Below, in pieces: positions 9,112-14,705 of a stretch of DNA of 27,111 nt (the stretch's first letter is position 1; every line of letters starts with the position of its first letter). Source of the stretch: Octopus sinensis (Eukaryota); contig NW_021834036.1 of the NCBI RefSeq assembly GCF_006345805.1, forward strand, positions 1 through 27,111, in the 5' to 3' direction. The notes under the pieces were generated by a model. It saw only the letters and a program-made list of their open reading frames with translations. It searched no databases and was not told the DNA's origin. Position numbers and translations under genes: made by a program.

Positions 9112-12100
9112 TTATTTGTCAAAATAAAAGAAAGCAAAAGATTGACGTCCAGGAATAATTCCAAAAACCATCAAAGAATTGTCTGAAACATCCAAACCAA
9201 GAACTTCAGAGACTTCATTATCATCCCCTCTGAGGAGTAAATATTTTGGATTATCTTCTAATTCCAGGATTTCATCATCTTCAGATGTTTCCTCTTCAAT
9301 ATGTCCAGGTATTTCGTAAATATTGTTTATTGTATCTGTTATATAAACACATTCACCAATTATGGTCAGACGAGGTCTTGCAATATAATATTCCGGACCA
9401 TAAAACCTTCCTTTTTCTATTCTTATCCTCCTCACCAAAGACTTTTCCCTGAACCATTCCACAAAACAAAAAACTTCCCAATCTCCAGACCCCTTCTTCT
9501 TCTTCATCTCCCACCTCACAACAACAACATCACCAAAAGATGTGACTCCCACACAATCCACCCTTTCATCTCCCTCAAACCTTCCCAATCTCCTCATCTT
9601 CCCACCACACACTTCATCTTTACATTTCCCATCTTCAAAATCAACCACATCCACATAATAAGGGTCAAAGATGTCAGGGTCTTTGCAATAATAGTAATCC
9701 TTGTTGTTTATCCATCTTCTTTGGTATTTCTTGTCTCTCTCTTCTTGAGTTATGTCTCTAATATAATGACCACCACACACGAGTTGATTGTCGTTGTATT
9801 TATAAATCCTGTTGTAGTATTTCTCAGTTCTGATGGTTTTTAAACGACGGAGATCCCTGTTGAAGACCCTCATTTCTCTCCCAAAGGCGACAATGAAACA
9901 TTCCTCTGTCCACCGACATATGTCCAGTGGTGGTCGTTGTTGTTGTTCATGTTGAAGTATGTCCACTGTTGTTGTTGTTGTTGTTCTGATTAATGTGACA
10001 CTTTCTCGAAATATCAACACACTCACATTCTCATCTAACTTAATTAGTTTACTGTTCCAGTCCCTAATGTCCCTCCAATCATAATCAACAGGTTCCTCGA
10101 ATGCAGGAATGGAAAAAGGGACCATTGCTGTCCTATATGGAAGTCTCCTCACTGATATTTCATCAATTCCTGAATTATTAATCTCCGCTATGTAATTACC
10201 ACATCTCACCTTTAATCTACCTTTACCAATTATTTCACCTGATTTACCTCTTCTTCTTCCTCCTCCATCTCCATCCCCTCCTCTGTATTCCAATTTATTA
10301 ATTAATTCATTACTGAATATTTCCTTGTTCGTTTCAGATGTAATGGAAGGGAAACGAAGACCAGAATCAAGATTTAATGACGACACAGATTCCAGAATGT
10401 TCACTTGGTCCCCATCAATCTTTATGCAATGACATTCAATCAATTCATTATGTACACACCAGTAAATACCCGCCACTTTTTTCCATATTACACCATAAGG
10501 GATGAGACTCGACCAAACTTGAGATGTCTGCAAATCTTCTCCATTCAGTTGAAATATTTCTTTCCTTTTAGGAACCGTGGCCATTATGTGTGATTCTTGT
10601 GTAAAACACACACCACCAACTAAACTTGCAACATTTCTGTGACATAGCAACTGGCCGTCTTCATCGAATATTTTAACATTTCCATTATTGGCTTTTTCAC
10701 ACACAACTGTCTTTCCTTCCTCAGAGACATCAAAATCTTTTACTTGAACAGGACATTCGTCTGTTTGTAAACGAGCAACCGGGAAGCTGTCTCGATTCAC
10801 CATAAACAACCCTTCAACATACAATTCATTCCTTTCTCCCCTCCTGGGGCTTCCAACAAACCTTGGTCCTTTACAGTCTATACTGGAGAATTCTACTTCA
10901 TCTTTATAAATTCTTTTATTTAAAAATATTCTCTTGTATTCCCCATTCTGGGTCAAACACAAAATATTTCGATATTCGGATGAAACAAAACATTTCTCCC
11001 AATAACCATGAATGTACAAAAAACTGTCATCAATTGTCATCCTGTCAACATCACCAATATAATCCCCTATGTAGTGTCTGACTGAATGTAAATATTGACC
11101 ACCACTGTTGAAGAAAATGATGAATCTTTCGTTGAAGACGATGATGACATCTTCATCAGTAACTTTAATATCCTGGATTCTATCAGAATAACCTCCATCT
11201 TCGTCTCTCCTTATTAATGGTTCAGGTATGTCTATTTTTTTTATTTCCTTCACACTCGAATGTATTTCATCAATATCAACAAAATGCAAATGTCTTTCAT
11301 CTCCCCATTCACTCAAAACCAGTTGATTATTTGATAAAGAAGCCACACATTTATAATTATTTCTCGTTTTGTAAATTACCAACGACAATGGAAATTCCAC
11401 TTTTAATGTCAACAGTTGGTGTCTATTATTATAATAAAGTTCCCTATTCGTAATGACCAGTGTGTTTGACTGCCATCGAGACATTTTAATACAATCATAA
11501 ATATTCACTTTGATTGAATCCATAAGGTGACCATCCAATGTGAATATCTTAATGTTTCCATTCTCCCTGTCACATCCTGCAATCAGATTATTTTCAGTAA
11601 GAACCAAATGATTAATCCACGCTGGTCCTTTGTCTCCCAAATGTTTAGGGGGAGGAATACGTCTGGCTTTATCAGAAACTGTCAGGTCCTGTAGATATAA
11701 AGTGGAAGACAACATTTCACTGAGAGAAATGTGTCTGGAAAATACATCCACCAGGTCGATATAATAATTAAGTTGATTATTAGTAACGAGATCATTAACC
11801 AACAAATTCTGATCGTTTATGGCAAACATACGGCTTCTGTCTATCAGATAAACAGACGTTTGGTCAATAGATCCACCTTGGAGACTGAGGGGACGTTTCA
11901 CTTGGGACATTAAAACACTGGGGACCATCTGACGACTGCCATGACCACCACCACTAATGTCCTTGAAGAAAGCTTCTGTTTCGGACTCTGAATCACTGGA
12001 AACCATACCATCACTACTACTAATACTACCATCACTACTACTAATACTACCATCACCACTACTAATACTACCATCACCACTACTAATACTACCATCACTT

Positions 12101-12734
12101 CCACCACTCAGACGACGTGCACTGCCATGACCACCACCACCTATTCTAGTGTTGTACTGAAAAGCTTTTCCCCTAGTAACAATTAATAGCTTTTCTGTTT
12201 TCTTGTCTATTGATAATGATTTCACAAACACAGGGATATTAATTGTCTTAATTACTTCGACTTGATTATAATTATTGATGGCTAAAATATCTAAATGTGA
12301 TGGTTTATCACAATAACAAACAATTTCACATTCACCCATCTTACACACCCGTACATAAGGCTGCCTTAATGATACACTTCTCACTGTCTTTGATAGGTTT
12401 CCAATGACCCTTAATTGTTTCTGTAGGGGTAATGTGACCCCTATATGATTAGAATCCCATCGACATATATCTGTGGCTGTAGACGGCAGAGATAATCTGG
12501 ACACAATGTCTCCTTCCTCAGAAATGTACAACAAGCAATCATGGTTGATGTCAGACACCACCAACTGTCCATTGGACAGATTACATATTTCGCCAATGAC
12601 AAGTTTTTGGTCATTCTCCTTTTCTTTGAGTCGTAGATTTAGATTTCTGATGTAAGGATTTTTAATGGGTAAAAGACAGCCAGACGACCGGTCTTGATAC
12701 TTGTAAAGAAGAACCCTGTTGAGTTGAGAGTCCG
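9112..12734 (-). CDS. Segment 4: propeller modules 3-6 with a Ser/Gly/Asp insert
   Basis: ORF 9112..12828 from PDSQLNRVLLYKY onward; about 1200 codons without a stop in AT-rich DNA. Confidence 0.9.
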
Positions 12735-14705
12735 GACATAAAGAGTTCCTTGGAAAACAGCAATGTGAGGGTGAACAGGGAAAGGCAGTTCCCACTGCCA
12801 TTTCATTTGTCCATATAGATCGTAACATCTGAGAATAGAGTGTCTCCTGAAGAGGACATAGAAATAAACATTATCAGAGTAGATGTGATGAGGGTGGCCA
12901 TAGAATGGAAGGTTTTTTGAAAAAGTTCTTCACCACATGTGGAATAAAATATCATTTTATTTTCGTTTCCATCTACGACTACAAAATTAATTGGAGTTGC
13001 AGCAATGCTGACATTATGATGTCCCAGAGAAATTCTTTCTGCAATGTCAACTTTATCTTTGTTGATCAATAGGATATGGACCTCGCTTTTGTTTTCAGTG
13101 GTGGTCACAGCTAGACACTTATTTGATACAACATGACATAGTTTAATGTAATCAGTATGGACTTTCATTAAAGGGCCTTTCATTAGCCCAGGGTATGTGA
13201 TACACTGAAATTCTTTGTTTTCATGGTAAAACACCAGAAATCCTTTAGAATTCATTCTACAAAAGCAAGAAGAAATCTCAGGGAAAGTTGAATTATTTTG
13301 GTTAATTATTTCTCCAGTCTCAGTGAATAATATAGCTTTATTATTCCTGTAGAATATTAATATAGAAGATGTAGACATAGGTAGAATATTTGTAATGTTG
13401 TAGCAATCCTCAATATAAATATAGTTGTTCAATGTTGGGGTCCATAGCTGGGGGTTATATGACTGCCTGGGCCAAAAGTCTTCATTTGTTCCAATGATAT
13501 GAAGGACATCAAAATAATCGGTTACAAAAATGTTTTCTTTGCCAACAGAAATATGGCGGCATTTCATGCCAATTTCTCTTGTTGTCACAGCACCTGTACC
13601 TGAAATCCGATAAATAATATGTCCCTGGAGGACATAAAAATGGTTTTGGTACACAGAGATGTGGCTTGGAATGTCCAGGGAATTGGTATCCACCTCAAAT
13701 AACTGCTGGCCATCCACATTGTAACAGGTAACCCTGTTAATATTGGAAAAGGATACTAAGAGTTTATTTTGTGCTCCTACAGCAATATCTGAAGGGTTTT
13801 TCTTTCGTTATGAATTCGTATTTTATTCTATTCTCTTCCCAGTCAATGACGTATATGGTCCGACCAAACATTTCTACACCTATAAGCGTAGAATGTTCCA
13901 AATAAGAAACCAACATTAATCCTAGCTGAATTCTTTTGATTCTCAAACTTAAAGGGTTGATAATAAGAACCATTTTTCGGAAGGGCAGGGTGGCGAGGAC
14001 TGTGTCTTCACTGATTCTGGTAAAATCAGTGACAGAAGATGAGCAATGAACTTCATTTCTGTTGCCGTCTCTTGTTATACAACATATTGTCATAAAGTGG
14101 CGGGAATATGTTACAATACCCCCTTGTATGACAACAATATTGGATATTGGTTTGCTTAAGTCTTCACCAGATTCTTCAATCTCTACTTCTCTGGTCACAA
14201 CTGGCCGAAGAGGACGAAATTTTGTGGTTACTTTTGGTGGTTCAATGGTCTTGTGGTTGTATGGGTTACAGGTGACATAAATGTCAAAGAGTCTTTGTTG
14301 AAACCAATCAAGGTTTTGGTGAACAAAATCATTATTTTGTTTTGCAAATTCCAGAAATCTTGGCATTTTACATTTGATATTACGTAGAATTCGAGATCCA
14401 TTTAAACCCAGAGAGTCCATGTGATTACATTTATCCTTTACATAATCTATAAACGTATTGATGTGGTCTGTTTTGATTAGTGTTCGGTAACATGTCACAA
14501 TATGAAGGAAACTTGGTAGCATGGACTTTTCCTGTTCTTTAGATTTCTTTGTGTCTTTTCTTTCCTGTTCTTCTGTTTTCTTTGTGTTCTGTGTATGTAA
14601 TATTTGGGTAATAATTGGTGTAGTTTCCTTATAAATTGCTGTTGCATCACAGACTGTGGCAGGAATGAGAGCCAACATTTTGTTTTCTTCATTAATCTTC
14701 TCCAT
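9112..14705 (-). CDS. Large intron-free multi-beta-propeller (NHL/TolB-like repeat) protein of about 1864 aa after correcting three 1-bp indels; frameshifted as given (assembly error or young pseudogene)
   Basis: Three consecutive same-strand long ORFs join at single-base indels, and the net corrected length is 5595 nt (1865 codons including the stop). Recurrent blade motifs include KPSDIAVGAQNKLLVSFSNINRVTCYNVDGQQL, IGEICNLSNGQLVVSDINHDCLLYISEEG, INHLVLTENNLIAGCDRENGNIKIFTLDGHLM and VKDFDVSEEGKTVVCEKANNGNVKIFDEDGQLL. These resemble the NHL propellers of molluscan TRIM2/3/71-like proteins. No RING or B-box is visible. Confidence 0.8.
12007..12099 (-). repeat. In-frame 21-nt coding tandem repeat (SSDGSIS/SGDGSIS), about 4.4 copies
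   Basis: Unit accatca(c/t)(t/c)actactaatact with period 21, inside a region bounded by a 19-bp direct repeat (11935-11953 and 12121-12139, both encoding GGGHGS). Confidence 0.95.
12735..12907 (-). CDS. Segment 3: hidden coding piece of about 58 codons, absent from the ORF track
   Basis: The third frame reads (P)FYGHPHHIYSDNVYFYVLFRRHSILRCYDLYGQMKWQWELPFPVHPHIAVFQGTLYV, which is blade-like and parallels LDIPSHISVYQNHFYVLQG. The overlapping ORF tail and head in the other two frames are not blade-like. Confidence 0.75.
12908..13794 (-). CDS. Segment 2: rest of propeller module 1 and most of module 2
   Basis: The frame of ORF 12803..13717 is open upstream of its GTG (SDIAVGAQNKLLVSFSNINRVTCYNVDGQQLF), so it continues segment 1 after a +1 indel. 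Confidence 0.75.
13795..14705 (-). CDS. Segment 1: helical, charged N-terminus plus the start of propeller module 1
   Basis: ORF 13764..14705. ATG 14705 has an in-frame TAA six codons upstream. The true frame leaves this ORF at KEKP (GGG, 13794-13796). Confidence 0.75.

Follow-up and report, generated by a model that had tools for sequence, protein, structure and literature searches.

What kind of protein is encoded by an intronless reading frame of 5.6 kb in the genome of Octopus sinensis, and from what did it arise? The frame lies on the minus strand of contig NW_021834036.1 (assembly GCF_006345805.1), of which positions 1 to 27,111 were analysed; this whole stretch of 27,111 nucleotides, referred to as the window, consists of animal DNA in which microsatellites abound. 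A previous examination of the letters alone (the sequence-only reading) proposed that the frame encodes a chain of six highly diverged propellers resembling those of the NHL family, and the parts of this proposal that were open to checking were borne out. It is now considered very probable that the protein has this six-propeller architecture and belongs to an octopod gene family. The fuller statement, that the family was amplified by segmental duplication and constitutes a putative diversifying cytoplasmic recognition scaffold derived from a TRIM-NHL-like gene, is advanced with modest confidence.

The frame runs from an ATG at 14705 to a TAA ending at 9112 and, once three one-base insertions or deletions (indels) are corrected, comprises 1,864 codons and a stop codon with no in-frame stop, the same ends and codon count as in the sequence-only reading. 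In the raw list of open reading frames (orfs) the coding region is split into pieces of 313, 304 and 1,238 amino acids, and inspection of all three frames revealed a fourth short segment that resembles a propeller blade. With the intact O. vulgaris paralogue P0002 (1,870 amino acids) as the tblastn query, the window is collinear in four frame segments (14705-13794, 13804-12914, 12923-12735 and 12840-9115). The frameshifts were pinned by nucleotide alignment of the window with five relatives, from which it departs by exactly three one-base indels (near 13801, 12914 and 12736; Table 1). Two of these lie in or adjoining runs of A and one lies in a run of C; the second and third both fall within the second propeller module. 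At the third site O. bimaculoides (locus L005) has CTACCGG, which is equal in length to the GTCCCGG of the other relatives. The remaining indels relative to the O. vulgaris copy (one of 45 bases, one of 12, one of 6 and five of 3) preserve the frame in eight of eight cases. The absence of introns also holds beyond the window: the coding sequence is a single exon of 5.35-5.61 kb in four intact relatives from two species (P0001, P0002 and P0003 of O. vulgaris, P0021 of O. bimaculoides).

On the evidence of sequence profiles and structural models, the protein is predicted to begin with a helical N-terminal region (~140 residues) and to continue as a tandem chain of about six compact beta-propellers, the modules M1 to M6, made of diverged NHL repeats. 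AlphaFold2 (AF2) was run with family alignments on residues 684-1865 of the window protein and residues 1-1085 of the 92%-identical paralogue P0023, giving mean predicted local distance difference test scores (pLDDT) of 60 and 55, respectively. The six module starts proposed earlier (amino acids ~180, 425, 680, 1010, 1301 and 1523) lie within ~20 residues of the AF2 blocks and agree with the register of profile-profile alignments, and the N-terminus that had been described as charged and helical is indeed predicted to form helices within residues 43-141, after which AF2 (on P0023) predicts a disordered linker. An all-beta, propeller-like fold is predicted for M1, M2, M4 and M6; M3 is interrupted by a low-complexity insert, and M5, where the pLDDT is below 40, is supported in part. 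Five to six blades per module are deduced from the 21-26 predicted strands of M1, M2, M4 and M6 rather than from coordinates; a single-blade hidden Markov model run along the protein finds the first blades of M3, M4 and M5 only, and the sequence itself gives no blade count. The opening motif that was said to be common to the modules (…NG-LVV-D..N..IKIF..DG.L…DICRW) is present in M3, M4, M5 and M6 and weaker in M2.

When the two models were compared with the PDB by Foldseek, multi-propeller proteins (CPSF160, DDB1, LRP2/megalin, ROS1, IFT-A and UTP proteins) came out on top with probability 1.0 and E values of 1e-13 to 1e-19, in agreement with a tandem beta-propeller fold. Profile-profile alignments (hhalign) match the modules to each other in register, most strongly M3 with M6 (92%, E 7e-7), M4 with M5 (87%, 4e-6) and M3 with M4 (75%, 2.5e-5), and more weakly M4 with M6 (58%), M1 with M2 (40%) and M2 with M4 (34%); such matches indicate that the modules are diverged tandem duplicates. 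M3 is the most conserved propeller, with 32% of its sites nearly invariant, and has a canonical NHL-like first blade (LVIGEICNLSNGQLVVSDINHDCLLYISEEGDIV…DICRWD); its Gly/Ser-rich insert, which contains a 21-bp tandem repeat at 12006-12099, is missing or different in most paralogues. M5 is poorly predicted after its first blade and includes a Gly/Arg-rich stretch; its profile similarity is confined to its first ~50 amino acids (with M4) and residues 31-153 (with the propeller of P0061, a relative from outside the octopods). The N-terminal region has high entropy across family members and no detectable similarity to the modules, to the non-octopod relatives P0059 and P0061, or to Pfam. No signal peptide or transmembrane segment was found in the protein (highest 19-residue Kyte-Doolittle mean, 1.38), and by the criteria of the TRIM family neither a RING nor a B-box was detected by Pfam in the window protein or its paralogues, leaving the helical residues 43-141 alone; all four absences had been noted in the sequence-only reading.

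As could not be seen from the letters alone, the gene is not solitary but belongs to a multi-copy family of at least 40 clusters. When the corrected protein was used as the query, 38 clusters were returned, all from O. vulgaris, O. sinensis or O. bimaculoides, 45-92% identical and 1,100-2,100 amino acids long, every one labelled "hypothetical" or "uncharacterized"; the O. vulgaris copies are mostly on one 29.2-Mb chromosome record (OX597841.1). A profile covering the first 1,010 residues, compared with 1.84 billion representative proteins at a cut-off of E<=1e-3, matched only 27 proteins: further Octopus members and fragments, a member of 1,913 residues in Argonauta hians, a divergent subfamily of 1:1:1 orthologues located on another chromosome, and three weak matches that are not from octopods and have a single propeller each (P0059 of the freshwater mussel Potamilus, P0060 and P0061). 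The six-propeller architecture, rightly called unusual, was found nowhere outside octopods among these 1.84 billion proteins, squid and cuttlefish included. As judged from these searches, the gene family is restricted to octopods (O. vulgaris, O. sinensis, O. bimaculoides and A. hians). Pfam assigned no significant domain to the raw orfs of the window or to five paralogues, and within the literature library searched, nothing on the octopod family was found under its LOC identifiers or under cephalopods together with NHL.

Two O. vulgaris loci that are 730 kb apart (L001 and L002) and one O. sinensis locus (L003) are collinear with the window, at 92-97% identity across the gene itself and across flanks of more than 10 kb on each side; the window is identical to none of the paralogous loci of O. 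vulgaris or O. sinensis. The more than 20 kb of flank common to the copies implies that the family grew by segmental duplication and not by transposition of the orf alone. At L001, ~4.5 kb from the intact gene for P0002, there is also an inverted partial family copy (20137-22589) that is 74-96% identical to window positions 9743-12902; it lies inside a gene model (19390-22767) that was called with C2H2 zinc-finger matches, and the database family "proteins" P0009 and P0013 are likewise fused with zinc-finger or hAT/DUF4371 parts. Family members start with one of two unrelated N-terminal sequences, either MEKINEENK…, which is that of the window, or MEDQTENT…/MKCQTRNT…; both merge into common sequence near residues 80-150.

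To which class of propellers the modules belong was addressed with profiles. By Pfam, NHL has no match in the three raw orfs (E<=10) or the five paralogues (E<=1); the best scores, all below threshold, are those of P0045 (18.5 bits, E 0.002), P0060 (17.1) and P0061 (12.1), and the wider family has sub-threshold Pfam matches to NHL only. A profile of the whole family, compared with PDB sequences, has sub-threshold matches to single blades of TRIM71, TRIM2, TRIM3 and Thin, and its blade at 626-655 (M2) matches a designed PQQ-like propeller (E 5.8e-5). A stacked profile, built exclusively from octopus sequences by aligning the blades with which M3, M4 and M5 open in six members of the family, matches TRIM2 (1.2e-22), TRIM3 (1.7e-20), Thin (1.4e-16), TRIM71 (1.8e-14), Mei-P26 (6.6e-13) and Brat (1.6e-10), six solved NHL domains, as expected if the blades are NHL-like. 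When three outgroup sequences are added, the E value for TRIM2 is 6e-28 and all six of its blades are matched, the best being blade 1 (29.5 bits). The natural eukaryotic matches of the blade profile are all TRIM-NHL proteins.

The sole named relative detected outside octopods, P0059 (KAK3588083.1 of Potamilus streckersoni; E 7.6e-7 with the family profile), is a protein of 467 amino acids with a single C-terminal propeller, a match resembling RING, and a B-box that scores above threshold. M3 aligns with the first blades of this propeller (hhalign, 89%) and with the propeller of P0061 (94%); the latter is in register with M3, M4 and M5, the match to M5 being 92% over 119 amino acids. M3 and P0059 have in common the motif …NG.LV..D..N.CLLY…LP…D(I/V)C…, and a word-indexed search with the P0059 propeller found no close relatives beyond P0059 itself. 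On these sequence comparisons the modules are NHL-like and probably derived from a TRIM-NHL protein.

Two of the propellers change fast at their predicted loops, as a repertoire for molecular recognition would be expected to do. The ratio of nonsynonymous to synonymous substitution rates (dN/dS) was computed per module by the Nei-Gojobori method in the six pairs formed by the window copy and three paralogues from O. vulgaris. Overall values are 0.6-0.96, and the differences between modules are sharp and consistent in six of six pairs. In the N-terminal region, M1, M2, M3 and M5, dN/dS is mostly 0.2-0.6, isolated higher values coming from pairs with ten or fewer differences (M1, 0.3-0.4 in most pairs; M2, 0.5; M5, 0.13-0.44), while it is 1.1-2.4 in M4 and 2.1-4.1 in M6 in all six close pairs. 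When the only changes counted were those found in just one of the four sequences (singletons), which are independent events, M6 had 67 nonsynonymous and 8 synonymous changes (ratio 2.1, p=0.043), compared with 116 and 70 in M1 (0.45, p 6e-7) and 46 and 27 in M2 (0.44, p 0.0013). A similar ranking is seen when the member from O. bimaculoides is the reference (dS ~0.35): M1 is lowest (0.3), M4 reaches 0.5-0.7, and no propeller exceeds M6 (0.7-0.8). In the alignment, variable positions form short patches between conserved strands: among close paralogues those of M4 avoid predicted strands (odds ratio 0.25, p=1e-6), as do those of M6 weakly (p=0.047). Across 37 family members, sites with more than 2 bits of entropy make up 20% of M4 and 14% of M6, and 0-6% of the other propellers. 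By these counts, M1 to M3 and M5 are under purifying selection, and in M4 and M6 amino acid changes outpace silent ones among recent paralogues, mostly in what are predicted to be loops.

Synonymous divergence is a mosaic along the gene. M1 of P0003 (locus L004) has a dS of ~0.7 relative to the other copies, as against ~0.05 elsewhere in that gene; in the window it is M2 that stands out, with 0.13 as against 0.03-0.07 among the other copies. This mosaic suggests exchange between paralogues (gene conversion or recombination) at roughly the scale of modules, so that tree-based tests of selection would need methods that account for recombination.

Several observations weigh against the interpretation of the family as a diversifying NHL-derived scaffold. 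The window copy is itself frame-broken, and many O. vulgaris members are short fragments, which implies that a large part of the family is decaying. The values of dN/dS above 1 derive from a few close, non-independent paralogues that bear signs of gene conversion, and the singletons of M4 (73 nonsynonymous, 12 synonymous, ratio 1.5) show an excess that is not significant (p=0.22). The confidence of the AF2 models is moderate, and M5 lacks a well-predicted fold; the Foldseek TM-scores are low (0.12-0.26) because the packing between domains is not predicted. No member ever attains the Pfam gathering score for NHL (PF01436, 20 bits), so "NHL-like" is the right wording and "NHL family member" would be wrong. 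Finally, the top PDB match of the blade profile is the cyanobacterial WD40 protein 2ymu, with designs derived from it; 2ymu scores higher by virtue of 13 repeated blades with the common motif DG..i.s.s.D.tiK.w..nG.ll and, since it tops both blade searches, the blade motif is not exclusive to NHL.

The alternative that survives best is an array of decaying pseudogenes that takes in the window copy and possibly most family members; a high dN/dS would then reflect constraint relaxed after duplication. This alternative accords with the three frameshifts, with the fragmentary models on the same O. vulgaris chromosome, with the overall dN/dS of 0.85-0.96 between the window and its closest paralogues, and with a coding region that is conserved no better than its flanks (~93-95% nucleotide identity). 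However, four paralogues keep orfs of 1,783-1,870 codons without a stop, the window has none in 1,864 codons and its other indels are all multiples of three, the nonsynonymous deficits of M1, M2, M3 and M5 are significant, M6 is above 1 and not merely approaching it, variable sites shun the predicted strands, and the family has persisted since the split of Octopus from Argonauta. Decay on this scale is regarded as the less probable outcome. As for the window copy, its lineage has no nonsynonymous excess in the conserved modules, so that if the copy is dead its death was very recent; it is either a very recently inactivated gene or an intact gene with indel errors in the assembly.

It is also conceivable, though rather unlikely, that the proteins are post-transcriptional regulators of endogenous mRNAs in the manner of Brat, LIN-41 and Mei-P26, with paralogues that differ in their developmental or neural targets and have not diversified to recognize parasites. 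Lineage-specific expansions of neural gene families are typical of octopus genomes, and the octopod family neighbours C2H2 zinc-finger genes. The natural eukaryotic proteins matched by the blade profile bind RNA; NHL domains in general bind RNA or proteins (PMC4015489, PMC5908797, PMC9070667, PMC9634614), RNA being bound through loops on one face of the propeller (PMC4015489, PMC5908797). Yet birth and death of copies combined with a dN/dS above 1 in paralogues of very recent origin is more typical of families driven by conflict.

A third possibility, considered improbable, is that the propellers are of the WD40 or YWTD type and resemble NHL by convergence on a generic blade motif. The ranking of 2ymu and its derived designs, the failure of NHL to reach its Pfam threshold, and the WD40 and YWTD multi-propeller proteins at the top of the Foldseek list would all fit such an origin, and the structural matches to LRP2 and LRP4 alone link the modules to YWTD. 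Against it, Pfam found neither WD40 (at E<=1-10) nor Ldl_recept_b (YWTD) at any threshold, the sub-threshold Pfam matches being exclusively to NHL; the best match to any single blade is blade 1 of TRIM2; six different NHL proteins are matched, each in all six blades; the closest outside relative has the RING and B-box context of a TRIM-NHL protein; and a module size of 220-340 amino acids fits six compact blades. A WD40 or YWTD origin is thus less supported than an NHL origin. Most unlikely of all is a mobile element or endogenous virus that has the gene as a component or as cargo. An intronless 5.6-kb orf in dozens of copies at 85-97% identity, repeat-rich flanks and annotated models fused to hAT/DUF4371 or zinc-finger parts might suggest this, but the copies have in common more than 20 kb of collinear flank and not precise element ends, Pfam detects no transposase, reverse transcriptase, integrase or capsid domain in the protein, no relative occurs among IMG/VR viral contigs, and the closest relative beyond the octopods is cellular and TRIM-like.

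The family can be set beside four known systems. Like TRIM2, TRIM3, TRIM71/LIN-41, Brat, Mei-P26 and Thin, the octopod proteins have the blade motif …G.lvV.D..N..I.iF…dG.l, compact modules of ~40 amino acids per blade, a predicted cytoplasmic location and a helical region ahead of the propellers, where TRIM proteins carry their coiled coil. Unlike them, they have no RING or B-box and about six tandem propellers instead of one at the C-terminus, and their genes are intronless, multi-copy and lineage-restricted with two propellers diversifying; classic TRIM-NHL genes, by contrast, are regulators of development that are conserved and present as single copies. The bivalve protein P0059 is alike in propeller and motif and differs by its single propeller and its retained RING and B-box. 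In having several propellers per chain, and hence the form of a multivalent platform, the octopod proteins are like DDB1, CPSF160, SF3B3, the YWTD arrays of LRP2 and LRP4 and the WD40 tandems of IFT-A; these scaffolds have no sequence relationship to them, are 7-bladed and WD40-like or extracellular (YWTD with EGF spacers), and are conserved across eukaryotes and not hypervariable. Among fast-evolving families of intracellular recognition are the fungal NLRs with hypervariable WD40, ANK or TPR repeats and the SPRY domain of primate TRIM5. The octopod family would be analogous to these in its lineage-specific amplification, birth and death, exchange between paralogues and loop-focused positive selection; unlike fungal NLRs, it has no recognized NACHT/NB-ARC, signalling or effector domain, and the analogy is functional only.

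How the family might have come about and what it might do can be outlined on this basis. A molluscan TRIM-NHL-like gene would have lost its RING and B-box, and its propeller would have been multiplied within one exon. The conserved propellers and the helical head may serve as a scaffold or oligomerization unit, and the variable loop faces of M4 and M6 may be where ligands (RNA or protein) that change fast or are specific to a paralogue are bound, in the manner of TRIM-NHL propellers. The family might then act as a cytoplasmic recognition repertoire, for instance against viruses or transposons. The earlier suggestion of a multivalent sensor or scaffold is indirectly backed by the dN/dS above 1 and the hypervariable loops of M4 and M6; a function as a recognition repertoire is tentative.

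Table 1. Coordinates of the gene, its parts and other features in the window (aa, amino acids of the corrected protein).
Feature	Coordinates	Strand	Description
Whole coding region	9112-14705	-	Single exon; 1,864 codons + TAA after three one-base corrections
N-terminal region	14166-14705	-	aa 1-180, charged; helices aa 43-94, 99-119, 121-141 (AF2, pLDDT 60-70)
Module 1	13433-14165	-	aa ~181-425; AF2 block 185-401, 21 strands, pLDDT 75-87
Module 2	12669-13432	-	aa ~426-680; AF2 block 433-665, ~23 strands, pLDDT 55-82
Module 3	11680-12668	-	aa ~681-1010; AF2 block ~700-1000, split by low-complexity insert
Module 3 Gly/Ser-rich insert	11920-12129	-	GGGGHGS…SDGSISS repeats; AF2 pLDDT ~22
Module 4	10807-11679	-	aa ~1011-1301; six-blade-like; AF2 ~1016-1300, ~24 strands, pLDDT 70-90
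Module 5	10141-10806	-	aa ~1302-1523; NHL-like first blade VQVKDFDVSEEGKTVVCEKANNGNVKIFDEDGQLL; AF2 pLDDT <40
Module 6	9115-10140	-	aa ~1524-1864, C-terminal; AF2 ~1526-1864, ~26 strands, pLDDT 65-92
Frameshift 1	13799-13804	-	Extra base in A-run, ~13801; window A5C3, five relatives A3(C/T/A)C3
Frameshift 2	12912-12916	-	Base lost ~12914; window CAAAAA-ACC, relatives CAAAAA(T/C)ACC
Frameshift 3	12734-12738	-	Base lost ~12736; window GT-CCGG, GTCCCGG in 4 of 5 relatives
Trinucleotide microsatellite	7712-8694		~1 kb; (TGA/GAT)n grading into (GAC/GGC)n
Spurious orfs of microsatellite	7672-8872	both	Three, overlapping, 320-394 aa
Direct repeats	16136-16890 and 22878-23635		758 bp, 96% identical, ~6 kb between
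Orf of 299 aa	21926-22825	-	Sub-threshold PHD-finger match (E 9.7e-5, 22.8 bits; cut-off 24)
Inverted repeat arms	17325-17507 and 17701-17887		~185 bp, 91% identical
Tandem repeats in arms	17371-17457 and 17757-17841		Three copies of a 29-bp unit in each arm
Palindromic segment	4711-4937		227 bp, 95%
Palindromic segment	15125-15313		189 bp, 80%; ~400 bp upstream of start codon
Dispersed repeat	3650-3815, 5051-5457, 20164-20295, 26580-27111	both	~130-420 bp, 77-92% identical

The sequence that surrounds the gene is rich in repeats (Table 1). The microsatellite, ~400 bp downstream of the stop codon, yields spurious orfs on both strands and a strong spike of GC skew, and the paralogous O. vulgaris loci align over it with differences in length. 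L001 and L002 possess one copy of the 758-bp direct repeat and lack the ~6-kb interval; no long orf of a transposable element is found inside to support the idea of a retrotransposon with long terminal repeats (LTRs), and the choice is between a local duplication and a degraded LTR-type element that faces a solo LTR. The sequence of the 299-residue orf recurs with ~90% identity at 1578-2525 of L001, in a different relative position. The inverted repeat arms, which lie in a very AT-rich stretch (GC 0.25), have the look of a foldback element or miniature inverted-repeat transposable element. The dispersed repeat recurs in L001 and L002 and is probably an octopus repeat resembling short interspersed elements.

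NHL propeller proteins are themselves known; what is new is the tandem-six, RING-less, hypervariable and lineage-specific form in which NHL-like propellers occur here. At a minimum, dozens of unnamed octopus genes gain an annotation as NHL-like multi-propeller proteins probably derived from TRIM-NHL, and the family offers a clear example of domain multiplication in one exon followed by segmental amplification of the gene. Little is understood of immunity in cephalopods or of the gene families specific to them, and a protein with conserved scaffold propellers and two hypervariable, putatively positively selected ones is a concrete candidate for lineage-specific recognition. The most far-reaching interpretation, which is doubtful at present, is that a new class of intracellular recognition proteins, encoded in the germline, arose in octopods in the form of a TRIM-NHL-derived chain of six propellers. 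The dozens of paralogues on one small chromosome would then be its members, M4 and M6 their hypervariable ligand faces, and positive selection and exchange between paralogues the means of their diversification; if true, the family would be a propeller-based counterpart of the NLR- or TRIM5-type receptors in the arms race with viruses or transposons.

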